In this document: piece by piece, positions 9,334 through 63,859 of the stretch
How the letters are laid out: each line of letters starts with the position of its first letter
Numbering within the stretch: the stretch's first letter is position 1
From: Vitrella brassicaformis CCMP3155
Taxonomy: Eukaryota; Protista; Chromerida
DNA: 63,859 nt
Assembly: GCA_001179505.1 (NCBI GenBank)
Contig: CDMY01000260.1
Location: forward strand, 1 to 63,859
Reading direction: 5' to 3'
Translations under genes and position numbers: made by a program
Notes under the pieces: generated by a model
What the model was told of the DNA's origin: nothing
The model's database searches: none
The model's input: only the letters and a program-made list of their open reading frames with translations

Positions 9334-10714
9334 CTACTCCAGCGTTAAACACAAAACGTCATCAGCCATGAATATCGCACTACCACCCGGCAGAGCCCGT
9401 CCATCCTCATTCCTCCTTCCCTGATAGCCGTCAGGCACGTCACGCTTTGGGATGACCTGATGACACTGACGCACGTCATCGCACCCATAAGCCAAAGACA
9501 GCGCGCCAGAATAGGGAGAGGCCAGCTCAAGCTTTCCCCGCCCATCCACTGCCCCCTCTGGAGCAAGGACACGCACTCGGTCAGGACAATCCCAGGAAGG
9601 GACGGGGATTGTCCTGGGCCGGTCGTCACCGAAGTGGCCGGAGAGGAAGAACAGCTTCACTGCGCAATAGTACTCCTTCTCCATTGCGGTGCCGTCCGGC
9701 AGCTTGATGCCGAGACTCATGGTGGCGCCGAGGACAGCGGGGCCCTTCATGACGAGGAACACCAGAGGGCTCGCATCGCCGACACAGCGCACCAAATCAC
9801 TGAAGCGATGCCAGCCAGCTGAGGCCCTGTAATGAAGACATGCATCAGTGCATTAGAATATCCAGCGGACGGAATGCACGAGCACCTGCATAGCAGCTTC
9901 AGTTTGCGGTTTTGCCAGCTTCGTGGCAGGACACTTGACAGAGCCACCGCCTCCTGAATACTCAGGCCGCTGCCCTTGGGCACCTGCAGACAAATCAATG
10001 CAAACGTCTCTCTCCGGTGTGTGGCTGTGTGGGTGTGTCTGTCTTCGACCTCGAATGGAGGCCGCCAAGAGTGTCCGTCCGCGCGAAGGACTTCGAGCTC
10101 ATCAGCTATGATCGTCTCACCCTGACCCGGCACCACTGCACGATGGCACCTGCGCAGATCCGCCGAAGGACCGACATGTGGGATATAGCTCGACCACTGT
10201 CTTCGCTGCTTGAAATCGCTGTAACCCAGCTGCCAAATCCCCAACTTCAACTTCGACCGGCCGCCTTGTCCATCTTCTTCGTCACACACCAGCTTCTCAA
10301 GCCCAGCGACAGACACGCGTTGGTCGGGGCGACAGCCGTAGATCATGGTCGGCTTGTCGAAGGGGCCGATGAGAGAGAAATGCGTCATCTCGCAGGAGTA
10401 TGAGTGGAAGCTACCGGCCTTCGGGAGCGTCAGACCGCCGTCGATGTAGATGCCGGAGACACAGCAATCCTTCCTAATGATGAACACGATGCTGCTCGCA
10501 CCACCCACATGTCTCATGAGATCACCATACTGCCAGCCATGGACAGATCCCCTACGAATGCCAACGGAGAGAGTGGGCGATTGACGACTCTGCAAGAGTG
10601 TACCTGTGTGTACCTGTATAACAACGTGAATGTGCACTCCTTGAAAGTGGATGGCACCAACATCGAGTGCAGCTTCGCAGACTGGGACTCAGTCAGACTA
10701 CTCCCAGCGATCAA
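9334..10714 (-). other. Tandem TLDc-like domains
   Basis: TFTLLYR|GSVHGWQYGDLMRHVGGASSIVFIIRK...IIADELEV and LKLLCR|ASAGWHRFSDLVRCVGDASPLVFLV...GGSAIFMADDV match the TLDc pattern (LLYRAS.HG..F...C....P.LV....FGA....F..DEVEV). Confidence 0.85.
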
Positions 10715-13700
10715 CTACCATCAGAAGGAAGCACACAGACGTGCAGGGCGATGCCTGAATGATGCCAGACATGTGTTATATGCGTCTCACCTGCGTGTTG
10801 TCTTCGCCCTCGTCTGTCGTGGTTCGAGTTGACAGCACACTGACGTCACCAGCCTCACCATCAGACACGTCAATCACGTCACCATCCACCTGATGGCAAA
10901 ACAGAGAACAACAAGATGAGCTGTGCACCGGCTGTCTTCTTTGTCTGTCTGACCTCTGGTACGTCGCTCAGCAGATCGTCAGCAGTGACGCTGCGTACGG
11001 GCTTGGCCGCGGACCGAGATGAGACCTGAATAGAGGACAAGACAAACAGCAGTGGCTGTACGGACTTCACTCGCCTCAACACATTGCTCACCACAGACGG
11101 GGCGCTCTTGAGAAAATGTGGATCATCGTTTCTCCTGGGGATCTGTTTGCGCCTTTCCCCGCTCTCCGTCCTCGTGTCCAGGGGATGCTGATGCTGAGGG
11201 AAACAAACACGCAATTGACTCCCTAATCCAGTTCCTCATTCTCAGCAGTTTACCTCCATAGTGTCAACGCTTTGCGAATGCTGCTCCGACTGCTGGTCAG
11301 CGGCACGACCAGCTGCGCCAGCTGGACGCGTGATCATCTGCAGAGCACAGAGGACATGAAGTGAGCCTTCTTTGTCTCTGCGATCTGGTGCACGACGCAT
11401 CTACCGGTTGGCCTGCTTCCATATCATCGCCGAGCCCCTCATCAATCGGCTCCATCTACACGACACACACTCATGCACCCGTGAATGTGTACCTGCATTC
11501 AACTGCGCCTACCAGGCTCTCAAGGGCAGGTTGAGCTCCGCACGGCGCAGCTGCAGCTGCGGAGGGAATCTCGCCAGACACTGAACAAGATGGCCGGCAC
11601 GATGTGTCTTGCGGGGAACCCTGATGCGCCCGCATGTCATCCGACTGCACGCACATCACACCCTCGGCATGAGACAGGTACAGAAATCCAGTCTCTCTCG
11701 CCTACTGTAAAGTCGTCAAGGATGTCTAAAGGAGATTGGAACCCTATAGCAGCAGCAGCACACGATGCAGGTACGTGCGGGCTCTCGCCGAACAACGAGC
11801 GTGATGGCGAATATCGGTTGGAACCGAAAGGGTCGTAGAGGTTGTTGGCCTCGTTGTCTTGGCTGGACGGCATGGGGCCGATCATGCGATCGATCGACAC
11901 AAGAGGCGGGGCGTCCTGCAGACCGTTCTCCTCGTTCCCATCATGTGCTGCTCCGGCTGCTGGTGGTGGTGGGAGGCCATCGTCTGGCGGCTGGTGTGCT
12001 CCTGCTGCTGCTTGTGGTGCAAGTGGGAGATAGGGCGGCTGTTGCGATTGCAGCTGCGGCGATCCATACTGCCATGGACCTACACCGACATTGCCGTTCA
12101 CCGGGCAGGTGCACTGGGGAGCGGCTGTGGGGTGCAGACCGGGCGAGTTCGCCGGCTGCTGGTAGGGAGGGACTGCTTGAGGGACCGGCGCATAGCCGTT
12201 CGTCGGACTCATGTACCCCCACCCATTGGCAGCGCCGCCATCACCATATGGGTGGCGCTGAAGGACTGCCTGAAGAGATGCTGGAGCGGACTGCCTGAAG
12301 AGATGCTCGCCATTCGGGTTGTCAAGTTCCGCCCGCACCCTTTCATCACATTCCTCGCCTCTTTCCTGACAAATCGACACGTGGAATCCACACAGACAGA
12401 CATGTGAAATCGCCACCTTACCCCTCGGTCACAGTCTTGTGGATAAAATGAAGGGGGAGGAAAAGTGCCGGCAGCAGGCCTGCACACACAGGGCAGTAGA
12501 CCCATAAACCAACTAATCGGAGATTCGTGATTCGTGGCTGCGTATTGCCTTACTGATGGTGTGGTGCCGGGGACGTCACGTGATGGCCGCGCTGCACGCT
12601 CGTGCCCATCGACAGGTAGCCGTCACCTTGGGGCTGTAGCGGACTGTTCTGCCAATACGCTGTCGGGTGATGGCGGGGAGGAAAGGGGGAATACAGACGA
12701 GAAACGTGTGACGGACCGTTGTGGGAAGGCGACTGAATCTCATGACGGTCCGTCAGTCGGCTCCCGTCAATTCGCTGGCAGGACCGGGGGTGCAGGTGCA
12801 CGGACCCGCCTGGGCTCGCGTGCCGAGGGGGCTGTATGGCCGTCGGGGGGTAAGCCATCGACGGGTGCCTCGGAGAAGGCTGTGTGGCATGCGTGGCAGC
12901 TTGGGGATGAAATGATGGCATGGGCCTTGCCCACAGGGGATGCCGTGTTGCTGCTGCTGCGCAAGTAGGGGGGCGGGGCGGGTGCATCGGACGGGGAGGA
13001 ATGGATGCTTCCCGTGAGCCAGCCACGTGTGGTGCGGCGCCGTGCTGTGAGAATGGCGTCGCTCGTGGCGGGCAGGGGACAGAAAGGCCTCTCGGCTGCG
13101 TCGTCATACGCCTCTCCCGGCGACGGCGGGCCTGGCAAAGCAATGGCAGATGGCGACCGACGTGTCTATTTGTGTGCTGCGTGTGGACGTGCGTACCTGT
13201 TTCTCTTTGTATTTCCGCATCTCTTCATGAGAAGGCCGCATCTCTTCATTAGAAGGCGTCATAGGCGCATCGCCCTTGGGCTCCGCCTTGTGCTTCTCGC
13301 GACGACGGCGGGACTGGTCTTGCTTGTATTTCCGCATCTCTTCGTGTGCGGGGGTCATGGGGGCGACGCCTTTGTGCTCGAGATGGAGGCGCACGGCCAC
13401 ACGCCACAGGCCTCTGCACCGGCACACAGCACACAGACACAGAGAGAGATGATGTACCGGCGGGTGTTTGAATTTGGTGTTGTTTTTCCGTCTTCTCACG
13501 TTTCGTATGCCATTCGCAGGAGGACGGGGATGGACGGGTTCTGGAGGGTCTTGCCCTTCTTGCCTGAACCAATCACAGAGAGAGAGCTTTCGTCGATGGC
13601 TCTGTCTGTGCGCCTCGCATCTCGCCGTGCTCACCGTGTCCGGACGCTCTGATGTAGTACCTCAGCAGCTCGCGGCCGGCCTCTCCCAGCGAGAACGATA

Positions 13701-15085
13701 TGCCGTCATAAAACTCAGGGATCTAATCCCGTCCACATACACACACGCACACACAGAGAGAGAGAGGCAATTAATACCTCTGTGGCCGTTTCGTCAGTGC
13801 AGTGCATGCCTTATGGGCGTCCTCAGTCACTCACTCACCTGCGCGTCAGGCGGGATGTCGTCTATCCTCAGGTACGACTCGACCGGCTGCGACACGATCT
13901 CATGAAAGCGCTGTTCAGTTGCACCAGCACCTGCGCCATTGCTGTCGGCCACTGTCATTGGCGGTGCCAGATGCGCCGCAGGACCGCCCATCTCTGGCGC
14001 GCCATATGCATACACAGGGAGGCCGAACGGAGGTGGTGGGTAGCTCTGTGGCTGCTGCTGCTGCTGCTGCTGTAGCTGCTGTTGCTGCTGTTGCTGGTGC
14101 ATGTTGTTGGTTTGGGCGTCATAGGGGTGGCCGTACATCGGTGTTGCTGATGGGGGAACGGGGGGATGGGCAGCCTGGTACTGCAACGGAAGGGCTGGTG
14201 GAGCAGTAGAGGCAGCAGCAGCAGCAGGAGAAGGCTGGTCTTGCGACGATATGGATGACACCCCTCTCAGCGACCCACTGTCGCCACTCCGTCTCGCAAT
14301 GCCCTCTTCCTCACAGTCGCTGTCCCTGCCGTTGCAAAGCAGCGACTCGCGCGGCAGGGAGTCACCGTTTGCCATGTCGTCACTCTCTGAACCAACACCA
14401 ACAGCAGCAGCACCGTGGCCGTCAGCCACTGGTGGGGGCGGAAACACCATGCCGCCCATCTGCAGTGGCACGGTGCCACAGCCGCCGAAATATTGGGTAC
14501 GGGGCGCATACACGGGAGGGCCGTACGGATGAGCCGACAGAAAGCCCTGTGGCTGCTGCTGCTGGTACGTGTCACAAGGCTGCCCGTACAGCGGTGCTGT
14601 TAGTGGTGGGGGAGCCTTGTGACGGGCAGCGGCACCAGCAGCGGCACCAGCCAAGGGCGGCTGTTCCTGCAATGGTATAGACGACACCCCCTTCAGCGAC
14701 CCACTGCCGCCCGTCGTCCCTTGAGCCATGGCCCACTTGCCCTTGATGCTCGGACCGCTCGACGACATCCGCAGACCATCACTGTCAAGGTCGCTGTCAC
14801 GACGGCCGTTGTGAAGGAGCGGGGGAGGTGACCTCATGGGCTCGGACTCGCGCGGCAGCGAGTCTGAACCGTTGGGCAGACCGTTGGCGTATGTGTGTGG
14901 GGGAGGGGGGAGGGGTGCCCGGTCTGCGGCTTGTGTGGGAGGGGGGAGGGGAGGGGGAGGGAATGACGGCCGCATCGCCCAGGGAGCCACGTGGGCGAAG
15001 GGGTTGCTCTGCAGCAAGGAAGCAAAACACACATAAGACAGATGATGAATGGATCTCCCGTGCTGTCTGTCTGGCTGGCTGTGCA

Positions 15086-15119
<34 letters not shown>

Positions 15120-16079
15120 TGATCTCTCACCCTTGAGCGAAATCGCGCCCCCATCGCGTCGGTATTGTGAGGATTGGTGGGCGGATGGGTGGGTGCACGT
15201 ATGGCAGCGGCAGCGGCAGCAGTGGGGGCCGAAGGGTCACTGAAAATGGCCTTGGCGGACGGATCATCCCCCGGGAGATCGCGAACTGTAAGCACATGCA
15301 TCGACACACATGTGCTTACAGTTCAGTGTCGTTGTCCTTGGCGCACCTTGTGAAGGCTCGATGGTCTTGCCGATGAGAGAGGGCGCCTCTGATGACGGAC
15401 GCAGCTTCTTCCTCAGCGATTCGTCATCCTTTCCCCCCCTGACATCTCCTCTCTGCTCCCTGAGCTGGACGAAGTAGAAGGGATCCGTCTCATCCAGCAC
15501 CGTCATGCGATCGTCATCTGCCATCTCCACCAGCACCAGCCGGAAGGGCACATGTGAATCGCGCCCTTTGGTGATGGCACGGTAAGGCATGTTGCCGCGG
15601 AGCTGCATCCCCACGTGGCTTCTGGAATCTTTTTGCCCGGAGATGGTCAGCAAGTCGTCGAAACTCCACGGCCCTTGGCTTTTGTCGCCGCCGTGGCCAT
15701 GGCTGCCAAAGCAACCCTGCTTTCCAGGGAATCCAAGAATGCCCGCCTTGTCCGTGTTCCTCTTCGGCGAGTCGGCCGGCTTCTTGGTTGCCTGAGAAGC
15801 CAAAAAGGCACAGGAATCATGAGAGCCTGAGGGCTCACATGACTCATTTCAAAGGCCCACCCAGAAGAAATAGTCGTCACGAGCCAGAAGGATGTTCAGC
15901 TTCTCTGCGCTAGCACTGCCAGTGCTCTCACCGGTTCTCTTCACGGAGATCTTGACTGACCACGGCGCGTTCGGTGTGCCTGGACGAATCAGCCATTGCC
16001 CGTCAAGTTTTTTCGCATCCGTTGATTTGATCTCCTCGCGCTCGTCGGGGTCAAGGTCGATGGAATACGCCATTTTCAT
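9334..16079 (-). CDS. Putative long gene: domain X - Pro/Gln-rich low-complexity linker - two TLDc-like domains (partner of ART1)
   Basis: Phase-consistent exon chain from MKMAYSIDLD (16079) via ORFs 15264..15803, 13827..15086, 13104..13634, 12550..13143 and 11637..12416, then small exons, to the TLDc exons. The weakest join is CA|GTAAGG at ~12552, which could instead be a TAA stop splitting this into two genes. Confidence 0.55.
13195..13375 (-). repeat. Coding tandem repeat KG(V/D)APMTPxxEEMRKYK(Q/E)
   Basis: Two copies plus a partial one are visible in ORF 13104..13634 and in the DNA (gtatttccgcatctcttc repeated). Confidence 0.8.
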
Positions 16080-16284
16080 CGAAAGATAAGCTACAGAGAC
16101 CCGACTCACCACGAGGAACAGGGCTCCCATGAAACCCTCTGTCAGTGGATCGAGGACGGAACGATAGAAGGCCTGGGCAGAAGGCCTTGACAGAAGGCCC
16201 GTCCTGTGACGATGGACAAGACGGCAGGCTTGCATTGCCAAAACGCGGCGAATTCGACGCGTTGTCGTGGTAGTTGTGTTGGTC

Positions 16285-16991
16285 ATGCTGCGCGGCGGAC
16301 GAGGTGGTGGATATGGACAGGGGTCGGGTGGACTTGGTCGTGGCGGCCGAGGAGGCGGTGAGTTTGGACCTGGTCCGGCTGGTCGGTGCTTCGTCTGCGG
16401 GAGCGTCATGAACCAGCTGCGAGATGGCCGTCGTCGCTGCCCATACCACGACCAACACTTCGCAACGGTCTACCACCAGACGAGTCTCAAAGGCTGGCTG
16501 GGCATCCGCGTATGCGAGGGAGGGAGGCGGGGGAGGCGAGAAGGGAGGGAGGTTTGCGCCAAATCATGCTGCCTGTGTGTCTATTTCCGTTCAGGAGGAT
16601 GGATACATCCATGGGAGCGTCAGTGACGGCATGATCTACGCCTCGCCCACACCGGAGAAGACCTTCTCCTGCGCTCGCCACAAGTACGACAGACACACAG
16701 ATCTGTATGCACCACGACCCTTCCTGCATCGTCTGCATTGTGTATGTGGTTAGGGGCATCATCCTGGAGATTTCCGTCCGCCGTTCCTACCTGGACTTCA
16801 CCTGCACCGAGCCTGGCAAGGTCCGCTTCAGCCCCAAAAAGGACTACAACATCAACAAGAGCGTCATGGTGGGCGATACCCCTGACTCCGTCCCTCACAG
16901 TCGCCAGTGGACCAACGAGCACATCCAGGTCAGACACCTGGTGGGATGCACCTGCGGATGCACCCCTAGCAGCGGTGGAAACGGGGTGTGA
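16285..16991 (+). CDS. ART1: small PARP-like ADP-ribosyltransferase-fold protein with RGG-rich N-terminus and C-x2-C-x13-C-x2-H motif (3 exons)
   Basis: Spliced: MLRGGRGGG...CFVCGSVMNQLRDGRRRCPYHDQHFATVYHQTSLKGWLGIR|EDGYIHGSVSDGMIYASPTPEKTFSCARHK|GIILEISVRR...RQWTNEHIQV. This gives YHQT, G.IYAS, G.ILE.SV and NEHI (cf. PARP FHGT, GIYFA, NEYIVY). Confidence 0.75.
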
Positions 16992-17849: not shown

Positions 17850-18434
17850 ACATTCGGGCGGAGATTGACCGGCTCCTGTCGCTGGAGGGTCAGATACACC
17901 AGCGCATCGGCCGCCTGATGTGCTCTGGGACGGGCAGCACACGGGCCGCCTGACTGAGATGGGTAGTGTGCAAACGTTGCCCGACTCACTCACAGATAGG
18001 TGGATGTGCTCATGTGGTATGTCTGCGTCGACCGACTCGACTCGATGGATGTATGGGTGGTTAAATAAGACAGGTCAGTCACAGTGATGTCTGTCGAATG
18101 ATGATTGATGCGATTGTGACAACAAAGCCTTCCATGGGCATGTCCTCCTCATCGCATGCATTGTCTGTCCATGAGCATGTGTGACCTGTCTGTCTCTGTG
18201 CACGGTCTGTGACCATGGCACCACAGAGACGGACGGGTGGCACACGCACAGACACACCCACTCACTCACTCAGACCATGGCATCTCACACACCACACACA
18301 CACGCATCCTCTAGATAGAGAGACAACTCGCCACAGCTGCCACAGCTGTAGTGACCTGTCTCTCTTCCCACAATGCATGGAAACGTTACGACATGACACG
18401 GCACAACACACATGCACACGCACATGCATGCCCA
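17850..18434 (+). repeat. Direct repeat copy 2 (orphan 3' end of the bromo/chromo gene)
   Basis: Near-identical to 8514-9077 apart from a few substitutions at the 5' end and a short insertion near 18355. Confidence 0.95.
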
Positions 18435-18544
18435 ACGACGTGGGGTCTTGTGGCCTCGTTGGCGAGCTGGAAGGACTAGCCAGGCTGAGTGGCTTGAAGC
18501 GGACACCAGCCGCAGTCCACCGCCACCATGCAGCCAGATCCACG

Positions 18545-19182
18545 TCAGTGGTTGACTTCGATGTGGACGTGATTCCAGTCGGCCACGCTCAGCCACTGCT
18601 TCGTGGGCCCCACCTCGGCGAACGCCTCGATGTTGTAGTCTTTGTAGGGTCTGAAGCGCACCTTGCCAGGCCCAACGTCTTCCAGGTGGCAACAGCGGAC
18701 GGACAGCTTCAGGAGGACGCCGCTGCACACAACATACACAAAATGCACTCACGTGCGTGTCTGCACTCTGGCGTGGCTGTGGTGCCCACCGGTTGGTGGC
18801 GTAGTCGAACGTGGCCTCTGGTGTCGGCGAGGCGTAGATCCAGCCGTCACGGCTCGGCTTGAGGCTTTCCTCCTTCTGAAGGGAGACACACGCCCACGCA
18901 GGCAACACCATGACGCGAGACACCCCTCTCTCCCTCCCTCCCTCCCTCCCTCCCTCCTCGCCTTTCCCGCCTCTCTCCGTCACATACGCAGATCTTCCGC
19001 CGGTTTTCTCCATTTGTCTGGTGCCAGAGCGTTGCGAAGTGGTCGTCCTTGTTGTATTGGCGCGCGCCCAAGCTTTTGTCATGGGTGTAAGTGACGGTCT
19101 TGCAGATGACGGTCTTGGTGCTGAAACCACCACCTCTGCCGGATCCACCACCTTTGCCGCCACGGAAGCATTTGGGCGCCAT
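18545..19182 (-). CDS. ART2: PARP-like ADP-ribosyltransferase-fold paralog (3 exons), lacking the Zn motif
   Basis: MAPKCFRGGKGGGSGRGGG...DHFATLWHQTNGENRRKIC|KEESLKPSRDGWIYASPTPEATFDYATNR|GVLLKLSVRCC...PGKVRFRPYKDYNI...WNHVHIEV. Intron positions match ART1. Confidence 0.75.
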
Positions 19183-19417
19183 CTTTCAATTGTACAAGAC
19201 GAAAAGAGCGATGAGGGACGGACACGACAACGAGGAAGCACCGGTGCCGGCGGGAGCTGATCTTTTGCGACGGCTCCTCTCTCCATTTCACAGGTCATTG
19301 TCGCTTATTGGGTCTTCGTAGTCAGGCCTTGCTTCAGACCTGCTAGGGGCAGCGGTTCCCCAGGGGATCGCGTAAACTTCGAACAGAAGCAAGCATTCAG
19401 ATCGTGGGACAAGAAAC

Positions 19418-21698
19418 ATGACACAAAAGATCCTCTTAGATCAGCAGTAAGTGTCTGTAGTGACTCATCAGCGTGACATGTGTGTGCGTCTGTGTGCGTT
19501 TGTGTAGGCCAATGTATGCAATTGAGCTCGAGGACCCTCATGAACGCAACGGGGAGGTACTGTTAGGCAACAAGCTGTGCGCGAGGTGGCTTGAAGGCGC
19601 TGGCTGGCTCCTGAGTCCAGACTCCTACAATGCGCCATGGACAGTCAAGGTGCCACTGACGCGGACAGCGAGAAGCAATGCTGCACATGAGGGGGGCCGG
19701 CTGAACATTCTGCTGTGCGCATTCCGTGACAATGGCAACGTCCTCTATGAGGTGAGTGCGCAGGAAAGCCGCGTGGGGTGACTGCTGGGTTTTGCCTGTT
19801 TCCAGGTGACGGAAGCCCTGCAAGCATCCTCGGCTTCTGGCTACCTTCGCAATGGCGGTCGACGAGCGCTCCCATTGGCGGCTCCTTCGGCAGCTCAAGC
19901 TTCGGCCACACCGGGCCCTTCACCTTCGACGAGCTAAAAAACAAACATAAGAAGAAGATCAATGAAGCTTTATCGCACCCGCCCGATAGCGACAGCGTGG
20001 CCTACATGGACAACAATGACCTCCTCTGGCTGCAGCTGCGCGCCGCCGTGCCCCAGACGGTCTATCAGAGGGACAAGAAGGACAAGAGGCGTCCTGTGCC
20101 GTGCCGCCTGCTGGTGGCGCAGTGGGCAGGGGAGGGGCAGCCGAAGACGGTCCTGGCGGCAACGAAAGTGTTCTACTTCGTGCAACTCAACACGACTGCG
20201 GATGGACAGAGGAGACGGATAGATGACGAGGTGCTGAGGAGAGAGAACACATTCACTAGGGGAGTTCCCGATCTCATCGGTACGACCATCGAGCCATCCA
20301 GCGGTACGACACACCAAAGAGATGACGACATGCTGACACGTCTGTCTGTCCATCCATCTGCCTGCCTTTTGTGTGTTGTCAGTTCATCCTCTCCCGAGTG
20401 GTCGTGGTGCTCGTGAAGCTGCTCGGCAGAAGCATCGTGTGGCGCCCAAGGCACCACCACCACCACCACCACACCAACGTACCATCCTTCCCCGGCCCTC
20501 TTTCGGCATCATTCCGCGACACCCTTCCGATCCACGTATAAGTCTTCTTCCTGGCGTATTGGGAGGTCTGCCGCCTGTGAGTCCACTCTTAGCTAATCCA
20601 TGGATGGCTTCCTTCATGGCAAATGGCCTTCCCCTTGGTGTCCCTCATCCGACGAGTATGGCCACGAATCGGGCCCTCGAGGCCCTGCTCGGCTTCAACA
20701 TCAACGGCTTCACAGGAATCAAGGAAGGACACCAGCAGGTTACCATCTTCGTTGATGCTCGTCTTCCTTCGTCTTTGCCTCAGCGGTTGCTGAACCGACC
20801 TGCAGAAGCCCCAGTCGACGACGTGAACCGACAGGTACACACAACAGAGAATCCGACACAAGGCACTCGATATTCTCATCTTGTCTTTCTGTTCAGCCCC
20901 GAGCAGAGGCCCCTGGGTCAGCTGCAGCCACTGCCCGTCCACAGCTTTCAGCCCAGGCCCCCCCTTGCTCCTCACTCGAGAGTGAAAAGAGACCAAGTCG
21001 ACAGGTACGACGGTGCATCTGCTCACAACGCTCTTGATGTTGCCTATTTTCCCTGCAGGCCACGACTTGGCCAGAAGACGAGATGTGTCAAGGGATTGCG
21101 GACCACGACGGCAGCCCGAGAGTTTCTGGCCAGAGGGCTCCCCCGGCAGCTCACCATTCTACCGGAATGGCGGTAGGGGAAGGACAAGGGGATGGATGTG
21201 TAATGGATGTTTCGATGAATGTGTGTATGTATGTGTGTGCAGTCGCTGAACCCCACTTGTGCAGTGCGTCCCCAAGAAATACACACAAAGCATCCATACA
21301 TCACCTGTCTGCACGTCTCTTGTACTCAGGCTGTGGTCACCGGTCGGCTGCCGTTGTTAGTGGCTAGCTCAGCGACAACATCGGTCTCTCACTATTCGAC
21401 GCGTCCCCCCCACCCCCATCCCGCAACTAGGCCCCCCGCTTCACAGCCGGCGCCACATACAACGACGACGGTCGCGGTAGCACCACCGTACGCAGCAGCA
21501 CCAGCTGCAGCAGCTGCCATGGCGCATCCGCCGTCCCCACCCGCTCAGGGCGATACTGCCGTCCATGTTTGTCTTCCCCCTGTCTGCAGGCCTGCCAGTC
21601 CGTCTGTCCCTGAATCGGTGAGGGATATGGGGAACATGCCTACCCTTGTGCATCCTTGTTGGTCTTTGGTGGTAGGCGGGCGCCGAGGACTGGTATGA
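19418..21698 (+). CDS. Domain-X protein X2 with Pro-rich tail (partner of ART2)
   Basis: MTQKILLDQQ|PMYAIELED...NAPWTVKV...RLNILL and ILGF...GPFTFDEL...LQLR...VPCRLLV...FYFVQL...PDLIGTTIEPS align with X1 (NAPWSVKI, KLNILL, ILGF, GPWSFDDL, MQLR, VPFRLVL, FYFVQL, PSLIGKTIEPS). The 3' exons and stop are uncertain. Confidence 0.6.
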
Positions 21699-22453
21699 TA
21701 GCATTTGGGCGAGCAGCCAAAGGGTAACGCACCAAACGATTAGGTTTGCAATACTGTGCAGCAAATCAGCTCCATGTGTTGTGCGCCTGGCTGGCTGCAG
21801 AGCGCTACACATCCAGTGAACGACGATGGACCTGCCGCCGACCAGCAGTCAAGGCAGCACCAGGACAGCATCAGCACATTGAGTGTAAGCCAGCAGCGCA
21901 GGCAAATCGGGAATTGGATCATGCTGTGCATTGCGGTGTCTATTTGCCTCAGCATTGCCATCCAGAGGACACGAGAATGGAATATCGTTGCATATTTCCA
22001 GCGGATCTAAGCCTGCGGATCTTGACGACCATCATGAGGCATTTCTTCCCTAATCACGTATCCATCAGCATCGACGTGAGGCTTGGAGAGATCTTGATGG
22101 TCAGTATGAGCCATTTGCTCATACTGACCATCAAGATCACTCCAAGCAATGAATGCGTTCCAAGCAAGCGGCCCCGGGATTCCATTTTCCAGGGGTGGGG
22201 TGGGAAAAAGAAAAGCCGCTCGATGGCTGGAAGCGGAAGTTGATGTAGAAGGATTAGGACATCTCTATGATAGTGTTATAATTTGTTTTTCGGGCAGTGC
22301 GGCTCTTATAGCTGATGATGTGGACATGCTTGGCGTGGTTCAGACTTTTGTCTCTTGACATGTATGGAATGCATGATTGAAAGCAGGACAGAGCAAGTCG
22401 ATGGATGGGATGACGCCAATTGATGAACAAACCAGTCCCATGCATGTACACAT

Positions 22454-25093: not shown

Positions 25094-25725
25094 AGAGAGA
25101 GGGAGAGAGAGGGCGAGAGGGCGAGGGTCATGTGTGTGTGGTTGGTGTGGTCAGATGGACACGCTGTATTTGACGTTTGGCGAGGACGATCGCTTCGAGA
25201 AGCTCTACACGGTCGAGGAGGTCACGCGGGACCTGGTCGACCCTCTCGTCGAGATCCGATTCCACGGCGGCGACATGCTCCGCATGGTCCCTGAGGTAAA
25301 GAAACCCGACACGGTACCCATCCACCCCATAGCACCCTGCTCACGTGTCTGTGTCCGCTATCGAGTCCAGGGTGCCAACCTTTACGACAAGGACGACATG
25401 GAAATCCCCATCGCCGTGTTTGCGGGCCCCGAGTACGACCCCGAGAGCGACCTCCTGATCACTGTGGACGAGTACCTCAACAGCACGGCCGCGGCCGGGA
25501 CAAACGCCACTGACGGCGACTCGACACGCAGACTGCAGTAAGGGACGGACGGAGGAAACGGACGGAGTGCGTGTGTGCATGTTGGGCGTGTGTGTGTGTG
25601 TGTGTGTGTGTCTCAGGCTGTCACGTTCGTTCGGCTCGACCCGTGGTCAGGTGGGCAATCAGGTCTTCTTCAACACCGGCTCTTACACCTCACGTGAGCA
25701 TACGGGGCGGCCGGCCGGGAGCACA

Positions 25726-25756
<31 letters not shown>

Positions 25757-25860
25757 GACGATGGCAACGTGTGTGTGCGTGTGTGCGTGTAGGCCGCTCA
25801 CTGGGCCCGGTGACGAATTTCAGAGCTCAGCGGTTCCAGGCCATGGCGTCGGGCGGGTAA
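24386..25860 (+). CDS. Hypothetical acidic protein with N-terminal signal/TM segment and two RRLQ motifs
   Basis: Exon chain MAESFTLRDFITLGGLAG|LMLMVLFQ...|VRRLQVNETA...DDLYK|MDTLY...|GANLY...STRRLQ|LSRSFGSTRGQVGNQVFFNTGSYTS|RRSLGPVTNFRAQRFQAMASGG* with consistent phases. Confidence 0.65.
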
Positions 25861-27042
25861 GGCCGGGCCGGCAGAGAGAGGGATCTGCACTGCAGACCAC
25901 ACAAATGGAATGACACGTGGGCACCTCTGTGTGTGTGGTGTGTGCAGTCGCTGCCGTGGCACAGCTGGCCAGTGCAGAGGGACCGGGCGATAGACACGCG
26001 TGAATTGCAGTCGGTGTCTCGTCCGTCGTGCGCCTGTTCTTTTCTCTCGCCTTGGTTCCTTTTCGGTTGGTTGGCCTCCTCTTCTCAATCTCACCTCCCT
26101 TCCTCTCCCTCCTCTCTGTCTCTGTTTTGCATGGATGGCGTCTTCTGTCGCGCATTTACGTGTGCGCCTTCTAGAAGATTCCATCCACTCAGACAAAGGC
26201 CGAGAGATGGATGGATGGTTGCATGTCAGAGTCTAGCCTCTCTCTTGTCCCAGTACGTGTACGTTTGTATGCATGTGTGTGTGTGTCTGTGTGTAACCAG
26301 CTAGCTATGAAAGTGATGGTAGAGATAGGCAAACCAAACGGGGTTTTATGGGCCCTTCCTTCGGTGCGTGGCTTGTGGCGGCTTGGTAGCGGCAGCCAGG
26401 TTGCGTTTTTTGTGGCTGTGGTGATCGTGCTTTATGTGAGTGCATCGATCGCCGCAACCATCGATGTGGGTGGGGATGGGACATTCATGCGTTTGACATG
26501 CATCGTATACAACACGATGATGATTAACGTCCGTGTTCCGCTCTGTCAAACCCCAGCCGGGTGTGCATACACTTATTCATGTGTCTGTGTTTCATTGGCC
26601 AACGAGTGGATGTCTGCTCATCACCGAGCAGACCTGTGTCTGGTGTGAGAGATAGGGGTGTGTCCGTGTGTGCGAATGCATGCGCGAGGGGCGGCTGGCA
26701 AGGTAGACAGAGCCTTTGTCGATTATTTCATTGATTCATCGGACAGTGAATTAAGTCAGGGCACACGCACCATCACACATCTGGCCATCGGGTCAGACAA
26801 AAAGATAAACTGACTGACTATAGCTCCGATCGTTGGCCAACGCACGGATGCTCCATCCATCCAGCCGCCCACCGCCCACCCACATGGAGCCCATAAAAAG
26901 GTCAGAAAGACACACAGCCTACGCCATCGCCAGCCCAGAGCAGTCCAGCCCCCCACGCCGCACCCGCCCACCATCTGATTGATCCATCTGATTGATGGAT
27001 GGATGCAAGCATGCATGGCCTTTCCACCCAACCACACCCTGC

Positions 27043-27888: not shown

Positions 27889-28237
27889 ACTGCTGACGGA
27901 AAGTACTGCTGCACCAGCGCACTCCAGGGGGAGCCTTCCTGTCTTCTCTCGAGGGGAAGGAGGGAGAGAACGAGAGATTCCTCTGCGAGCTTATGGGTCT
28001 GAGCTCGCACCCTTCTCCATTGAGGAAATGATGTGCACCTCTGTGTCAGTCCGTCACGCACATTCGCGACGTATTCGTGTCTGTCTGTCTGTCCGCCGCA
28101 TCCATCCATCCATCCATCAGTGGTCCCCCATTGACTCACACGCCTGCACAACACGTACACACACCGAGCACGCCATCAGCCATCAACACACGCCCTGCCT
28201 CTCTGTGTATCTGCACCTGTCTCGTCCGTTCGCTTGT

Positions 28238-47480: not shown

Positions 47481-48952
47481 TCACCTGCCGGCCCGCCTCT
47501 CCTTCTTGGCCACCCTCTGTGCCTCTTTGGCCTTCTTGGCCTCCTCTCTGGCCTTCTGCTCGCGGATCCGCCCCTGTTCCCTGTGTCATGCAGACAGACA
47601 GACAGAGATGACGACGATGCATGCNNNNNNNNNNNNNNNNNNNNNNNNNNNNNNNNNNNNNNNNNNNNNNNNNNNNNNNNNNNNNNNNNNNNNNNNNNNN
47701 NNNNNNNNNNNNNNNNNNNNNNNNNNNNNNNNNNNNNNNNNNNNNNNNNNNNNNNNNNNNNNNNNNNNNNNNNNNNNNNNNNNNNNNNNNNNNNNNNNNN
47801 NNNNNNNNNNNNNNNNNNNNNNNNNNNNNNNNNNNNNNNNNNNNNNNNNNNNNNNNNNNNNNNNNNNNNNNNNNNNNNNNNNNNNNNNNNNNNNNNNNNN
47901 NNNNNNNNNNNNNNNNNNNNNNNNCCCCCCCCCTGCCACGTCAATTGTCACTCCTCACTTCTCGTGAGCTTGCTTGGCGGCGTCGCGCTGCATCTGTTCG
48001 ACCGCCTTGACCTGAAGACATGAAGACGTGGACCGATCACATCAACCGGCAGCATGCAGCACCGCAGACAGACAGTGTGTGTCAGAAGGGGCCGCTGGCC
48101 GTCTTTCTTACCCACTCACCCGACCGTCTGACCCACCCACCCGTTCTTTGTTGTCGTTGCGCAGCAGCCCGTCGTCACCGGCATTCTCACCCCGCCGTGT
48201 CAGGCCCTGAGTCGTGTAAATCTCGCCTGCACAAACACATAAATACATACATACCCACCCACCACATTAACAACAAGGCCAACCACACACCCATCCGTCC
48301 ATCAACGGATGGACGCTATCTATCCTTTTCTCCCTCCCTCCCTGCCCACGGACCATTTTCGCCCCTCTCGACGCGTTCGCTGACTTCCATGCCATACTGC
48401 TCCATCACACTCTTCTTCAGCCGACGCTCCTCCTCATCCTCATCGTCAATCTCACCACCGCCATGCCCGCCGTCCTCATCCCCACGCCGGCCATTCGACG
48501 ACTGCTGCCTATCCTCCCCCTCAGCTGCGGAGGACGCCTTGATGGCGTCCACCAGTCTGCTGTGCTTGGTCTCGGTGGCTTTGGCCCGCTGCTTGGCGTC
48601 GAGGTCACGCCAGCGGTCGAAGGCGTCGCGGGCGATGGAGTGGAGGAGGGCCTCCTTTGAGTCGTCCTCCAGCACTGCGAGCAGGCTGCCCTGGACGGCC
48701 TCGAGCTTCTCGTCGTCATCCAATGAGTCATCCTTCACAATGCCCAACACATACTCTGACACACAGACAGACAGACCATTCCACAGAGTGTGCCGCCAGC
48801 CATCGTGTTGTGTTTCCATCTTTGGGTTTGCGTGTCTGTCTGAGTGCTTTGTTTGTGCACCACTGCGCACCGGCGTATACGTCGCCGTCGATGCCGAGCT
48901 CCTCGAGCTTCTGCCGCATGAAGGCCATGAACTCACTCTCCGCCTCATCCAT
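47481..48952 (-). CDS. CCDC43: CCDC43-like coiled-coil protein (spans the second N gap)
   Basis: MDEAESEFMAFMRQKLEELGIDGDVYA|EYVLGIVKDDSLDDDEKLEAVQGSLLAVLE...KKSVMEQYG...LLRNDNKER|VKAVEQMQRDAAK...EQKAREEAKKAKEAQRVAKKERRAGR* follows the CCDC43 pattern (LEALGVD..VYG.YILGIL...EKLDALQGIL...LFRNTN). Confidence 0.75.
47625..47924. other. Assembly gap (300 N)
   Basis: Run of N. Confidence 1.
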
Positions 48953-49592: not shown

Positions 49593-49624
<32 letters not shown>

Positions 49625-57891: not shown

Positions 57892-59129
57892 ACCATGACA
57901 GCTGCCGGGGTGCATCTATAGTTAGTTGATTTGATTTGCTTTGTGTCGTGGGTGTGGGTGTGGGTGCGGCGTCGACCGATCGATGCTCTCTCTTGTCGCT
58001 CCCCTTGCTTGTTTTCTTTCTTTACTTTTTGCTCCTTTCCTTTCTCTCTTTGGTTCCTGGGTGTTACCCAAGTGACGTGACGTACGTGACATATGGATGC
58101 ACGCCATGGCGAGCGTGCTGCATGTGTGCGTGGGTGTGTGCGTGGGTGTGTGCGTGGGTGTGGGTGTGGGTGTGGGTGTGGGTGATTGATTGACTGACTG
58201 AGAATGATGCCTTGCCTTGCCTTGACCGAGTCCTTTTTTGAGCTCGCCGGCCCCCCACTCGCGCCAGGCCAATGGAGGCCAGGGGGCTTTTGTATCGTAT
58301 CGATATATTATGTACAGGTAGCCATCCCATCCATGGCTGGCATGGGCCGATCGCGTCAGCGAGCGACTGAGTGCAAGTATCGCTGCTGCTGCTGCTGCTG
58401 TAAACCGACCTTATGTGTTGATACAAACTCTCCAGTGCTGCTGTTACGGTGCACCAGACACACACGCGCCCTGCCCGGTGCACGCGCCATTTTCCTCTCT
58501 CTCTCTACGTCTCTCTGCATGCTACCTGGTGTGGGTGCTGGTGTTATGGATGCTTTTGATGGATGGATGGGTGGAATTCACTGCATGAGCCTCCTCGCCA
58601 TTTCTCCTTTTCCAGTAATAGATGTGTGTTTGGGGGTGTGCGACAGCTGCTGGTGGTGATGGCTTTGCTTTCGTCAAGGGGGAGGGGAGGGGAGGGTGCG
58701 TGCGGCTTGCTATTTATCGGTGTGTCGATGGTGACCGCTGACTGACTGATGGATGTGATGGCTTTTGTGGACAGACACCGGCGTGACTTCCTTCATGTCG
58801 TGTGATGATGTGGTGTTGCATGTTTGGTCAATGACCAACCAATGCGAGAAGAGAATTATTGAAGTGTGTGGGTGCGGATGGATGCAAATGTCCTCAGACA
58901 GGTCCCAACGTCCATGCATCCATCCATCCATCCATATATCCCCCTTGTCTCATTAAGCCCCCGCCCCCTCCTTCCTCTAGTTCCACATCATGTCAGCCAG
59001 CACCTCTCGGCCGACACTGCTCGTCACCCAAGCGGTCCGTCGGCCTCTCGGCCCCACTCTCTCCAACGTACCCTTTTCAGACTCATAAGCAACACACACT
59101 GCTCGCCTCATCCTGGCAATCTGCACAGG

Positions 59130-62100
59130 TCATACAATCTGCTGCGGGATCTGAAAGATTACAGGGATAGAGCCAGGAATTGTAGAGTGCAGTAGCAAGA
59201 AATCCGCTCGCCCCATCGGGTGGTCAGGTAGGTCGAACGGTGAAGGGGTGAGCAGGCTGCAGTAGACAGCTCCTGGTCGCCTGCAAGCGAGTGAACACAA
59301 CTCCTTGCTCAGCCTCATATTGTCTCGTTTTTCGGCGTGCTTACCTGCCGGCAGGCTCTTTGGACATCGCTTGGAACTGATCGTTCAATTCACACGCCTG
59401 GCGTATGGTATGTACGCTGCAGCGGCCTCCGCTCTTGGAAGTGGAATTACACTGCCGATAGGCCTTATACAGCACCTCTGCACCATGTTCAATCCTTTGC
59501 ACGGCCTGAGGGAATGTGTGCTGCATACCCTCCGGCAATGTGTGGCCGATGCTCTTTTGTAGCACGTCTGAAACACACAGACATACGCAGCCAGAGGAAA
59601 GCGTTGCCACATCTTAGGTTGCCAGCCGGTCGGCCATGTGTTTGTGCCATGTATGCATACCGATCTCTTGCATTAGCGAGTCCTTGTACGCCACGTACTT
59701 AGTAAACTTGTCGCTGAGGCGCCGCGCACTATCGTCGAGATCGGTCCCGATTGTTAGCAGCAGCCCCTCAATCACACCTAGCCTCTTCTCCTACTCAGCG
59801 AGACGAATGGTCTTCTGGAAATATGTGGCACAAACAATTCAAAGAGCACGAACGTGTGCGTAACATGAAGCGCTGATATCGTTTATATCTATCACCTCCT
59901 GACGCACTGGAATGAGGCCCTGGGATGTCCATTTAATGTGGTCATCTTCCATGTCTTCCATATCGAAAAGCGGCCGCGCGCGACGTCTGGGGATAGACTG
60001 ATGGCCGCCGCTTATCTGAATGACCTCCACGTCATCGGCCTCAAACTCTTCGCTGCCACCAAAAGAAAAGCCATCCAGGTTGCGTATCCTTCACCCCCTT
60101 GTAGCCAACAGGCGCATCACATCCGTCGACAAAGTGACGGCAGCTGCGCACGTCAGCATCCAAGGCATTGTCGTGTACTCCACAACCGACAAATAGACCA
60201 CCAGCCAAGCCGATCTTCAGTATCAGCGCCGCGTCCCGCCCGGCCAGACGGACGGACTGGCACCCTTCATAAATTGTCGTTGGATTGTCGAAATGGCCGC
60301 TAAGAGAGAAATGCTGTACATAACATCCAAATCGGCTGGATTGCGTGGGGCCGTCTGGCAGCCGGACGCCGTCATTGATGTACGCGCCGAACACAAAGCG
60401 GTCCTTGCGGATAACAATGGCAAGGCCGCTCGCACCGCCCACACAGCGGAGCAAATCTCCAAAACGGCCACCATCACGAGAGGCCCTGGAAAGGAGAACA
60501 GTGGCAATGACGCGATCACCCAAGAGATAGAGAGGTAAGATGGAGTCTACCTGTATAGAAGCTTCCGACTGCCTGATTCCGGCACCCTGAGGCAGCAGGT
60601 GAGTGCCGCAGACTCCAACGCACACAGCTTGCTGCCCTCGATCGTCTGAAGGGAGGGAAGGCACGCACAGCGCACACAACAAGTAACGGTACCACGCGAC
60701 ATTTTATTTTGTCCCTTGTCTGACCTGCGGTGGCGGGAATGAAATGCCATCAACACCAATGATCTCCAACTCGTCAGCCAGAATGCTATCCGAACGGCGC
60801 GCCTGGATAATCTGACGGCAGCTACGGATGCTTGCACAGCGATCGTGCTCACTCCAGCCCAAACAAAGGCCATCTCTCCAGCCGACCATCAGCTTTGCCG
60901 CCCCATCCACTCCCTCCTTCACTGCCCTCTGAGGCTCCCGCCCAGCCGCAAACACAAATTCTCGGCCTTGCTTGATGATTCTGATCCTGCCCAAGTGGTT
61001 GGCGAAAGAAAAGCGCCACACATCGCACGTGTACAGGTTGGCTTGGCTTGGGTCTCGATGCAGCTTGATGCCGTCTTTGATGTAGATGCCAAAGCAATGG
61101 TGACCGTTGCGGATGACGATCACGAGGGGGCTAGCATTGCCGACACAGCGGAGCACGTCGACATAGTCTTCACCATTGGCAGAGGCCCTAATGACAAGAC
61201 CATAAAGCGACAAAAACGTCCAATTCGGTGCCTCTGACTTGGGTCGCTCTGTCTTGTGTACCTGTACAACAGTGTGAAACTGCATTGGTCGAAGATGGAT
61301 GGCACGAATAGAGAGTAGAGGCCCTTGCACTCTGCCGGACTCATGCTGCTGCCAACGATGACCTGCACGCAGACAGACGCGGGTCTTGGAGACTGTTGTG
61401 CATTCTTAATTCTGATGTGGACGCAATCATGCCATGTGCAGACTCTCACTTGAGGGTCGGGCGATCGGTCGTCTCCGCTCGTCGCGCTGTGAGTTGAGAC
61501 GGCCGTGACATGAGTACTTGCATCGTCAGACACACTGAGCATGTCACCACCATCATTCTCCTGATGACACATCATAGAGAATGGGATGCGTCCTAAAGCA
61601 GTCGATAGGCCTCCTTGTATCTGTTTGACCTCTGGGATGTCACTGAGGCGACCGTCAGCAGTCGGTGTGACTGCCGACTTGACCGAATTACCAGACCACA
61701 ACTGCACACACACACTCAGAATGCCTCCCCGTCTGTGTGGGTATTCATTTGATTGCGTTTCACTGACCTCAGATGGCAAGCCCTCTCGGCAGCTGCGTGT
61801 GTCGCTCCTACGAATCTTGTTCGGCGGCCTCTCGTTGGTCAGGCGGCTCTCTGACGGCGCCTTCTGAATGGCAACACAGACAGCTCAAACAAGCCGCTAC
61901 AGGTGAGCCCTCTTGGTTTACTTACGCCCATGGTGTCGTGCTCTGATGGCTGCGACTGTTGGTCGAGTGGCCGATCGCTGGCAGCAGCAGCATCGTCGTC
62001 TGGTGGCCAGATGGTGGTCTGCAGTCAACCGAAGAGCAAGTTCCCTCAGTGGTCATCTCGTCACTTCTGTTGCGTCTGAGTACCTGGCGGCTGAGATCGT

Positions 62101-63302
62101 TGTTGCGTCCAATGAATCCGTCTGCTTCTCGCAACGCAGCTGACTCGTCAACCACTTGACTCTGCAGGCAGCAGGGGAAAAGACACATGGAAGAACTACG
62201 CGAATTGTCGTACGTCACGTGTTGTTTCGTTTCCTACCTGCTGGTCGCTGACGCTGTCGCCTTTTCGTGGCGGTACTGGGGGAGACTCGGTGTTACCGTC
62301 AGTGCTTGCCGCAGCGACAGGTGGCTCCGAAGACGGCAAAGGACCCTGAGAGGGTAAACATGAATCGTCGAAAGGCGAATCTCTCACTGCGGGCGCTCTG
62401 TCTGTCTACCTGCATATCATTGGTAGTGTCAGCAAGGGATGATGCAGGTGAGGCAGACGGCCCGGGAGGATTCTGAAGAGAGAGGGGCACGCAGACAATG
62501 AGGGATCGATGAACCCTGGACCTGTGGGACTGACTCGCCGTCTTCCCACCTGCTGGCATCGCTTCCTGAAGGCTTTGACCCATGACTTGGTCCCCTTGAA
62601 GCCAATGATGTCCAGCCGACTGGCGATCTCCATCGCCATGGCACGGATGTCCTCTGTAGGGACACTTGTTGGGTTGTCATGGGTGGCCATCCACTGCCGC
62701 ATCTCGTTCTCGATCTGCTGGTACTTGGGCGGTGTATGGCGTTTCTTGGTCGGGTCGATGAATGGCATGCCGCCCTCCCTCTGCTTCTCTTCCTGCCGCT
62801 TGGCGCCTCTGAGCCAGTTTGCGAAAAGGTAGGGCGGCAAGCGCTTCTCTCTTGCGAAGTCGTCTGCTGTGATCTTCTCTCCGCTCTGCTTGCGCTGGTT
62901 GAATTGTTCCACCAAGCGCAGCCGCTCTTCGATAGAGACCTCCTCTTTCCTCCGACGCATCACCTGCAGACACACAAGTGTAAGGCTTAGCCTGTTGGTT
63001 CTCAGAGCAACTGGTGTGTCGAATTGCCAGGGTTATCTGTGAGGATCGTTGACTCGTTGGTCGTGTAGACGACGGGGTTGGAGGGAGGGACCCTGCACGC
63101 CTTGCTGCACCCTGTTTGTTCGTTTGCATCTCTTTCTGCAAACGAAAATTGCCCAGTTTGACATTGCCAAATGCCGTGTGGGAAGCCTGCTGCCTTAGAG
63201 CACCTGAACGATGGCGATCAAGTGGTCAATCACACGAGAGCTGTCATCGCCGCGTTGGGGACTCCGAGGCGCGGACGCAGCTTCAGGATGCGAGCTTGAC
63301 AT
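59130..63302 (-). CDS. CENP-B/pogo-type HTH DNA-binding domain - linker - two TLDc-like domains - helical tail (partner of ART3); apparent 1-nt frameshift near 60085
   Basis: VMRRRKEEVSIEERLRLVEQF...ANWLR...KRHTPPKYQQIENEMRQWM...EDIRAMAMEIASRLDIIGFKGTKSWVKAFRKR (psq-like + Tc5 HTH pattern), spliced in phase through six small exons to FTLLYR|ASANG...LRCVGNASPLV and KLLYR|ASRDG...LRCVGGAS. Confidence 0.7.
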
Positions 63303-63598
63303 TGAATCAGAGGGGATTGAACTCAATCGAAAGAGCAGATAGCGATGCTGTAGCGGCCGCTGGCACAAGACGCTTCCACGAATCGCCCTTTCCAGCGTTT
63401 TCCGGGCCAGCTTTTCATTGGTGTTGCGGTGGCGGGACCTCGAATTACGGCCGCGACTGGACCCGCAATTACGACCACATGTCCAGTACGTCCAGCGCGT
63501 CGCGCTCTTCCGAAGCACTGAGGATCTCGGTTGGCATTCTTGCTTCCTCGTTGTTGTGTCCGTCCCTCATCGCTCTTTTCGTCTTGCACAATTGAAAG

Positions 63599-63799
63599 AT
63601 GGCGCCCATATGCTTCCGTGGCGGCCGAGGTGGTGGATCCGGCAGAGGTGGTGGCCGCGAGCAGCGTGGCCGTCAGTGCTTCGTCTGCGGGAGCGTCATG
63701 AACCAGCTGCGAAATGGCCGTCGTCGCTGCCCATACCACGACCAACACTTCGCAACGGTCTATCATCAAACACATCCCATCTACTGGACCAGCATCCAT
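63599..63799 (+). CDS. ART3, first exon only (gene continues beyond the window)
   Basis: MAPICFRGGRGGGSGRGGG...QCFVCGSVMNQLRNGRRRCPYHDQHFATVYHQTHPIYWTSIH| followed by a GT donor at the same position as in ART1/ART2. Confidence 0.8.
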
Positions 63800-63859
63800 G
63801 TGGGTGATGGGTGGGTGAGGCGGGAAAGGCGAGGACGGAGGGGGGGAGGGAGGGAGGGG

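Follow-up and report, generated by a model that had tools for sequence, protein, structure and literature searches.

The first 63.9 kb of contig CDMY01000260.1 (145,762 bp) of Vitrella brassicaformis CCMP3155, hereafter the window (63,859 nucleotides, with coordinates identical to those of the record), carries three small genes, ART1, ART2 and ART3, whose products have 183, 152 and 156 amino acids (aa), each arranged head-to-head with one large partner gene. The C-terminal domain of the three proteins probably adopts the ADP-ribosyltransferase (ART) fold and, on predicted structure and conserved motifs, ART1-3 look like probable minimal enzymes of the H-Y-[D/E] type. The explanation that we consider best, and moderately probable, is a Vitrella-specific cluster of probable ARTs in which the three pairs go back to a single ancestral pair and the head-to-head linkage was therefore inherited by local duplication.

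In the arrangement that we propose, the ~100 C-terminal residues of each of the three small proteins most likely form a minimal ART core of the diphtheria-toxin/PARP/Arr type, preceded by an RGG box at the N-terminus and, except in ART2, by a zinc finger of the form CxxC-x13-CxxH. This core would bind NAD+ and transfer ADP-ribose, because H and Y residues have established roles in diphtheria-toxin (DT)-type ARTs and Arr is an enzyme of ~16 kDa with an H-Y-D triad (PMC8120803, PMC12340436), and the RGG box and finger may bring the core to nucleic acid or to a nucleic-acid-bound protein. Between each ART and its partner would lie a short promoter region common to both and read divergently; the partners belong to a mosaic family that takes three forms: an orphan domain, X, followed by a Pro/Gln-rich middle, a linker and two TLDc units; a truncated copy with X only; and a pogo-type helix-turn-helix (HTH) followed by the linker and two TLDc units. 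All three pairs would derive from one ancestral pair by local duplication, with the ART copies continuing to exchange sequence by gene conversion. If the ART fold holds, the cluster is a new family of eukaryotic ADP-ribosyltransferases that are minimal, orphan in sequence and joined to elements that bind RNA or DNA; it would provide a candidate nucleic-acid-directed ART in a free-living relative of the apicomplexan parasites. The pattern of conserved NAD-pocket motifs, replacement changes about as frequent as silent ones and active gene conversion is unusual, and typical of conflict genes.

The ART genes and their transcripts

ART1, ART2 and ART3 are all transcribed and spliced. ART1 (16285-16991, forward strand) encodes an RGG box, a finger and an ART-like core in three exons (16285-16509, 16595-16683 and 16754-16991), with both joints (16509|16595 and 16683|16754, removing introns 16510-16594 and 16684-16753) present in RNA contigs. 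The 183-aa model is identical to an open reading frame (ORF) from MMETSP (P0009), which together with the RNA contigs backs the start at 16285; the genome-annotated version (P0003, 142 aa) begins too late, at 16408, and is without the RGG box and half of the zinc finger. ART2 (18545-19182, reverse strand; P0001) encodes an RGG box, a degenerate finger and the core in exons 19182-18988, 18875-18790 and 18722-18545; both of its introns (18876-18987 and 18723-18789) are present in RNA contigs, and an MMETSP ORF (P0006) represents it. ART3 (63599-64573, forward strand; P0002, also MMETSP ORF P0007) runs past the window, which holds its exon 1 (63599-63799) and the start of intron 1 up to 63859; the gene is confirmed by a spliced 946-nt cDNA contig (L003) that maps to 63439-63799, 64222-64307 and 64390-64888. 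The RGG box is N-terminal in all three proteins, and the CxxC-x13-CxxH finger is found in ART1 and ART3.

Intron 1 of the three genes (16510-16594, 18876-18987 and record 63800-64221) is rich in purines, its coding strand showing runs of (GGGAGG)n, and is 70-86% identical between paralogs, as high as the exons, with intron 2 hardly or not alignable. Intron 1 may be a G-quadruplex-type or regulatory element.

As far as sequence searches reach, the family is limited to these three linked genes. An exhaustive phmmer search of 1.84 billion representative proteins returned only ART1-3 and one low-complexity chance match, and scans of viral, prokaryotic and metagenome contigs with the pattern of the ART alignment found no relative. 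A first-pass annotation of the window had proposed to look for family members elsewhere and tabulate their neighbours; as there are none beyond ART1-3, no such table can be drawn up.

A predicted ADP-ribosyltransferase core

The alignment of ART1-3 contains the invariant blocks HFATxxHQT, DGxxYASPTPExTF, PGKVRF and DYNI. The first of these, HFAT(V/L)(Y/W)HQT in all three proteins, shows the H-x-[ST] pattern of the H-Y-[E/D] clade of ARTs, and its invariant histidine (His56) would, from the alignment, contact the NAD ribose. The second, DG(Y/W/M)(V/I)YASPTPExTFxY, has the G-x-h-Y-h-[AS] pattern of the same clade; its first tyrosine is invariant, and 11 residues on (Y-x10-Y), where the clade has an aromatic residue that stacks on nicotinamide, a second tyrosine follows in ART2 and ART3. 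The same spacing of 11 residues separates the tyrosines of diphtheria toxin and PARP1. In this clade the catalytic Glu or Asp stands at the head of strand beta-5. A catalytic glutamate that had earlier been proposed in LEISV of ART1 is not supported by the alignment, the position being lysine in ART2 and ART3. The sole acidic residue invariant in ART1-3 is the aspartate of DYNI (Asp126), and by analogy the invariant His56, Tyr81 and Asp126 (ART3 numbering) would form the kind of H-Y-D triad that Arr has. The invariant columns fall together in the motifs, to an extent matched by 132 of 20000 shuffles.

Models from the ESM Atlas were compared for ART2 (predicted TM-score, pTM, 0.56) and ART3 (pTM 0.66; predicted local distance difference test, pLDDT, 0.75). 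Every Atlas neighbour of these two proteins that has a fold-relevant Pfam family belongs to the ART clan (Arr-ms, PARP, Tox-ART-HYD1, TreTu_C and Exotoxin A), and CNF-type toxins are also among the neighbours of ART2. The neighbours have structural TM-scores of 0.46-0.63 and feature scores of 0.76-0.88, the latter to be counted as leads only, as are all feature scores < 0.9.

The partner genes and their modules

Partner 1 (9334-16079, reverse strand), a gene call annotated with 1795 aa, comprises an X domain, a long Pro/Gln-rich middle, a linker and two TLDc-like units. Its X domain (X1; 15347-16079, reverse strand, exons 16079-15931 and 15825-15347) is recognized by homology to X2, the partner of ART2, and RNA joints are seen at 15285|15347 and 15825|15931. 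ART1-3, X1 and X2 are all seen spliced in RNA, and the body of partner 1 (9334-15200) is seen as shared words only, 52% of the sampled words being present in transcriptome run X6. On the same strand lie TLDc-like unit A (10056-10714; exon end at 10614, intron 10613-10552, main exon from 10551) and unit B (9334-10000; exon end at 9886, intron 9885-9827, main exon from 9826 to the stop at 9334). The X2 gene (19418-21981, forward strand) consists of an X domain (19418-20303) and a Pro-rich ORF that continues beyond the annotated stop at 20541, with homology to partner 1 up to 21981. Partner 3 (60041-63302, reverse strand), a gene call of 781 aa with HTH_Tnp_Tc5 and TLD matches, comprises a pogo/CENP-B-type HTH, the linker and two TLDc-like units. 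Its HTH_Tnp_Tc5 match (62550-62723, reverse strand; PF03221) scores 30.2 bits (cut-off 22.2, E 4.6e-07) and covers profile positions 1-61 of 66, and its units, on the same strand, are unit A (60728-61362; exon end at 61262, intron 61261-61188; PF07534 at 15.8 bits, E 0.014, below the cut-off) and unit B (60041-60700; exon end at 60551, intron 60550-60486; PF07534 at 20.9 bits, E 3.8e-4, cut-off 24.5).

The first-pass annotation had described these modules as shared pairwise among the partners, with an HTH in the third, and its description is borne out. X1 and X2 are homologous (tblastx 1e-24, 40% aa identity over the main exon); the linker and two TLDc units of partners 1 and 3 align in collinear blocks (6e-36) with identical intron positions; and the HTH of partner 3 lies above the Pfam threshold. 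Each of the four TLDc units contains a GT-AG intron of 59-74 nt, in phase 2, within the Arg codon of LLYR|AS, and the units show the pattern LLYRaS.dG...F...CvG..p.lvvi......vFG.Y. TLD is the sole Pfam match of the TLDc-like units, below the gathering score (single-exon pieces of partner 3), and the precomputed TLD matches of partner 3 are weak and those of partner 1 faint. No PDB chain was matched by a profile built from all four units, and a TLDc exon piece used as protein query found no relative among candidates of 163-518 aa, a range outside which long TLDc proteins fall. For the X domain no relative was found in the Atlas, Pfam or PDB, nor by hhalign against the TLDc units, and in the protein database its sole match over the length range searched was X2 itself.

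An exon-intron-exon segment of partner 1 (11165-11343, reverse strand) is ~70% identical in DNA to X2 at 21795-21981 (124 matches over 178 positions, a level that 0 of 200 shuffles reach), which makes X2 a truncated partner-1-like gene. Partner 1 is probably one gene; an origin as two merged genes is less likely, as the segment in common with X2 bridges into the exon in common with partner 3. X2 as annotated was rejected as a complete gene, given that the RNA introns differ and the ORF runs past 20541. The annotation splits 19418-22315 into genes of 264 and 300 aa with introns that lack RNA contig support. With the RNA junction 19751|19806, the conserved C-terminal stretch of the X domain in X2 is no longer in frame; the sequence does offer a donor 4 nt further downstream that would keep the frame, and none of the RNA contigs was seen to use it.

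The Pro/Gln-rich middle of partner 1 (13827-15086, reverse strand) contains an internal repeat (14208-14285 against 14628-14711, 75%) around SGSL(K/R)GVSSI motifs, and looks like a long disordered linker.

Spacing and evolution of the pairs

Start codons are separated by exactly 205 bp between partner 1 and ART1 (16080-16284), 235 bp between ART2 and X2 (19183-19417) and 296 bp between partner 3 and ART3 (63303-63598), and recomputation thus returned the very distances first reported. The RNA contig of ART1 begins at 16236 and the cDNA of ART3 at 63439, <=137 nt from the ATG of partner 3. The 62 nt that adjoin ART2 are ~97% identical to the 5' untranslated region (UTR) of ART3, and beyond this likeness no promoter motif shared among the three intergenic regions was found.

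The order X1 (reverse), ART1 (forward), ART2 (reverse), X2 (forward) is a mirror image, so that loci 1 and 2 are accounted for if one pair was duplicated once in inverted form. Locus 3 may lie ~41 kb from locus 2 on one molecule, a distance as assembled that spans two gaps of 300 N each (33391-33690 and 47625-47924), both between loci 2 and 3 and outside all six genes. As part of the same, moderately probable explanation, local segmental duplication, in part inverted, together with rearrangement at the level of exons would have produced all three pairs from a single ancestral one. Silent divergence (dS) between the TLDc modules of partners 1 and 3 is saturated, with third-position identity of 0.42 against 0.29 expected by chance.

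The ART genes have a different signature. Between ART1 and ART3, third positions are identical at all of codons 21-50 (16382-16500 against record 63672-63790), which cover the zinc-finger/HFAT region, and between ART2 and ART3 the 62-nt 5' UTRs (19183-19244 against 63537-63598) are ~97% identical and the third positions of codons 1-20 are 95% identical. ART3 is therefore mosaic, resembling ART2 at its 5' end and ART1 in its middle, and an ART3-derived contig that splits onto ART2 and ART1 with an opposite-strand joint at 16382|19127 fits such a mosaic. These identities imply that gene conversion among the three ARTs is recent or ongoing.

Outside the conversion tracts the ARTs replace amino acids at about the silent rate (ratio of replacement to silent rates, dN/dS, ~1), yet their ORFs stay open and their NAD-pocket motifs are conserved. 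In the core, dN/dS is 0.73-1.34 by NG86, a method that can overestimate the ratio under biased codon use such as that of the ARTs, whose third positions are 49-54% C. The exons of ART2 and ART3 have 74-76% nucleotide identity, about the same as the 78% of the 3' flank. In simulations, an unconstrained ART ORF stays open in only 7-14% of cases per lineage, and the ORFs and splice sites of ART1-3 are all intact and expressed. A conserved pocket with a fast-changing remainder fits a conflict-type gene.

Weighing the alternatives

Several observations weigh against the reading of the cluster as probable ARTs in locally inherited pairs. With regard to the history of the cluster, gene conversion has effaced when and in what order the duplications took place, and the status of partner 1 as probably a single gene rests on homology across the junction. 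With regard to evolution, a dN/dS near 1 also fits relaxed constraint, and the codon bias noted above could have raised it. With regard to the fold, the zinc finger of ART2 is degenerate; the second tyrosine (Y92, ART3 numbering) is cysteine in ART1 and the glutamate of DYNIE (Glu130) is asparagine in ART1; and, judging from the alignment, placing the acidic catalytic residue needs a structure. Pfam searches at E up to 10 gave no ART family for ART1-3, only two unrelated matches at chance level; profile searches of PDB sequences with the ARTs gave noise only and no solved structure; and searches of PHROGs and PADLOC gave nothing. AlphaFold2 models had a pLDDT of 34 (ART2 alone) and 30 (three-sequence alignment) and are unusable, and the Atlas feature scores are leads only.

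Among the alternatives, the one that survives best, though unlikely, is that each pair is a true two-gene module kept by selection, in which the ART is an effector and the divergent X/TLDc partner senses, targets, restrains or neutralises it from a shared promoter, as in an immune/conflict or toxin-antidote system. Each of ART1-3 has retained, at 205-296 bp, a partner assembled from one common set of modules, and the ART3 transcript begins close to the partner 3 ATG; the TLDc modules of partners 1 and 3 diverged anciently, so the linkage is old if the ARTs were adjacent throughout; fast ART evolution is compatible with an arms race; and an interferon-induced isoform of NCOA7 is a TLDc protein (PMC11798991). 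Set against this, the linkage has no independent occurrence: the first-pass annotation held that the ART is always head-to-head with such a partner, which is so for three of three copies, but these three linked genes are the whole family. Its further argument, that linkage which survived duplication marks a co-regulated functional unit, does not carry, since local duplication explains the pairs and adjacency is its default outcome. Nor is head-to-head orientation unusual here, as the same annotation had itself cautioned: divergent pairs with gaps of 87-516 bp make up 4 of ~14 other gene adjacencies in the two stretches of the contig examined, which speaks against a system. Contig depths in run X6, a poor measure of expression, are 56.6 for ART1 against 4.75 for X1 and 8.2 for ART2 against 26.9 for X2, a difference of up to ~tenfold whose sign is reversed from one pair to the other. 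In the dominant transcript of X2 the reading frame is broken. The partners have no known domain that binds or removes ADP-ribose: macro, PARG, ARH, NUDIX and WWE domains were found neither in them nor in the large ORFs tested and the gene calls at 8.5-29 and 54-75 kb, the interval 29-53 kb having been sampled. A literature search for links of TLDc with ARTs or PARPs, or of TLDc with Vitrella, found nothing relevant. Apart from adjacency, no result of the analysis speaks for functional coupling of ART and partner.

More specifically, it is decidedly unlikely that the small RGG/zinc-finger ART is one of two components of an ADP-ribosylation module in an algal conflict or stress system, the tandem-TLDc (or X) partner being the other and the TLDc protein serving as sensor, targeting subunit or restraint of a fast-evolving effector. 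If true, TLDc domains and ADP-ribosylation would be linked in function in a way so far unrecognised. To our knowledge TLDc domains are still without a general biochemical role, and a demonstrated ART partnership would be a useful lead for them; at present it rests on one locally copied ancestral pair.

It is also rather improbable that the C-terminal domain is not an active ART, and that ART1-3 are instead small nucleic-acid binders of the RGG/zinc-finger kind whose beta-rich domain is degenerate or of another type. The lack of a profile or sequence match to any ART, the failure of AlphaFold2 to find a confident fold, the dN/dS near 1 and the substitutions at Y92 and E130 in ART1 and at the LEISV glutamate in ART2 and ART3 all point this way. 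They have to be set against the Atlas neighbours of two paralogs, which for each paralog separately, and on features as well as structure, come from the ART clan only, against the invariant H-x-T and G-x-x-Y-A-S motifs and the Y-x10-Y spacing, which match DT-type ARTs, and against the clustering of invariant residues in ART motifs. The first-pass annotation had described the genes as PARP-like ARTs, and the ART-clan neighbours and invariant H and Y motifs support the ART part of this description as probable. Very improbable, finally, is the idea that a mobile element spread the ART/partner units within the contig and that they are its cargo or remains, as suggested by the pogo/Tc5 transposase DNA-binding domain at the start of partner 3, the 585-bp direct repeats (94.5% identity) that bracket partner 1/ART1, the 181-bp and 85-bp segments (95-97%, one inverted) that bracket partner 3/ART3 and other large inverted duplications in the region, because no ORF tested has a transposase catalytic domain, reverse transcriptase or integrase, the flanking repeats are without clean terminal repeats and target-site duplications, the 585-bp repeat is the 3' end of a neighbouring bromodomain gene, and the flanks of units 1 and 3 are unrelated to each other.

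Repeats and neighbouring genes

The two copies of the 585-bp direct repeat lie on the forward strand at 8514-9077 and at 17850-18434, the second between the 3' ends of ART1 and ART2 and with a loose contig ending at 17850. The repeat holds the 3' end and 3' UTR of the bromodomain gene, a gene of 1637 aa upstream of partner 1 whose bromodomain (PF00439, E 1e-05) lies at 3237-3932 on the forward strand. In a transcriptome contig of 3985 nt, sequence from upstream of 8514 continues, with few mismatches, into the copy at 17850. This is a hint that the assembly is faulty here, that strains or haplotypes differ, or that a form lacking the 9-kb partner 1/ART1 unit exists. The segments that flank partner 3/ART3, of 181 bp (inverted) and 85 bp (direct), lie at 58309-58489 and 58946-59030 and correspond, at 95-97% identity, to record 65048-65317; neither has the look of a clean terminal repeat. 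The interval between loci 2 and 3 has a 3.7-kb inverted duplication (25591-29288 against 38578-34992, 79-94% identity) whose spacer contains the gap at 33391-33690, and the large ORFs tested in this 25.6-38.6 kb region had no Pfam match.

Comparison with known systems

Among the closest known enzymes is Arr (Arr-ms, PF12120), a stand-alone DT-type ART of ~16 kDa with the triad H19, Y49 and D84 and no obvious sequence similarity to other ARTs (PMC8120803). Like Arr, ART1-3 are very small, and the acidic residue of the Arr triad is an aspartate, as is the sole invariant acid of ART1-3; Arr-ms is the top feature match of ART3 in the Atlas (0.82) and is among the matches of ART2. Unlike ART1-3, Arr is bacterial and has neither RGG box nor zinc finger; there is no sequence or profile (HMM) match between them, and the H-Y and Y-D spacings are 25 and 45 residues in ART1-3 against 30 and 35 in Arr.

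With PARP (PF00644) the ARTs have in common the H-x-T and G-x-x-Y motifs and the Y-x10-Y spacing, and their PARP neighbours by structure in the Atlas include a 161-aa chordate PARP-domain cluster and giant-virus PARP clusters. The Gig2 proteins of fish are small, tandemly duplicated, weakly PARP-like and induced by stress or virus (PMC3617106), and like them the ARTs are small and duplicated. Unlike PARP and Gig2 proteins, the ARTs have a core much shorter than the PARP domain and no WWE, macro or PARP regulatory domains; they do not match the PARP catalytic domain profile PF00644 at E up to 10, and no Gig2 or PARP protein emerged as a relative in the phmmer search of 1.84 billion proteins.

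The toxin domains Tox-ART-HYD1 and TreTu_C are minimal ART cores of 130-170 aa and recur among the structural neighbours in the Atlas (TM 0.44-0.54). As C-terminal warheads they arm secreted RHS/LXG toxins, whose immunity genes lie next to them, and they have no sequence match to the ARTs; the Vitrella ARTs, unlike them, are intron-bearing nuclear genes with an RGG/finger N-terminus and no secretion signal.

On the partner side, the repeats carry the TLDc pattern of OXR1, NCOA7, TBC1D24 and mEAK7, with TLD as their sole Pfam match. The interferon-induced isoform of NCOA7 acts through V-ATPase (PMC11798991); for the Vitrella units nothing points to V-ATPase binding and, unlike those of the four named proteins, they are tandem, joined to the orphan X or to a transposase-derived HTH, and score below the cut-off. 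Bacterial toxin-antitoxin pairs such as DarT/DarG also place a small ART beside a counteracting gene (PMC8120803), which is how the effector with an antidote suggested in the first-pass annotation would work. The antidotes known from such pairs either have a hydrolase domain (macro or ARH) or act by direct binding to the toxin, and no such domain is present in the Vitrella partners; unlike DarT/DarG-type pairs, moreover, the Vitrella ART/partner pairing is without independent replicates. What is new here is thus probably a sequence-orphan version of a known kind of enzyme, itself a probable ART, in a local cluster whose members recombine.

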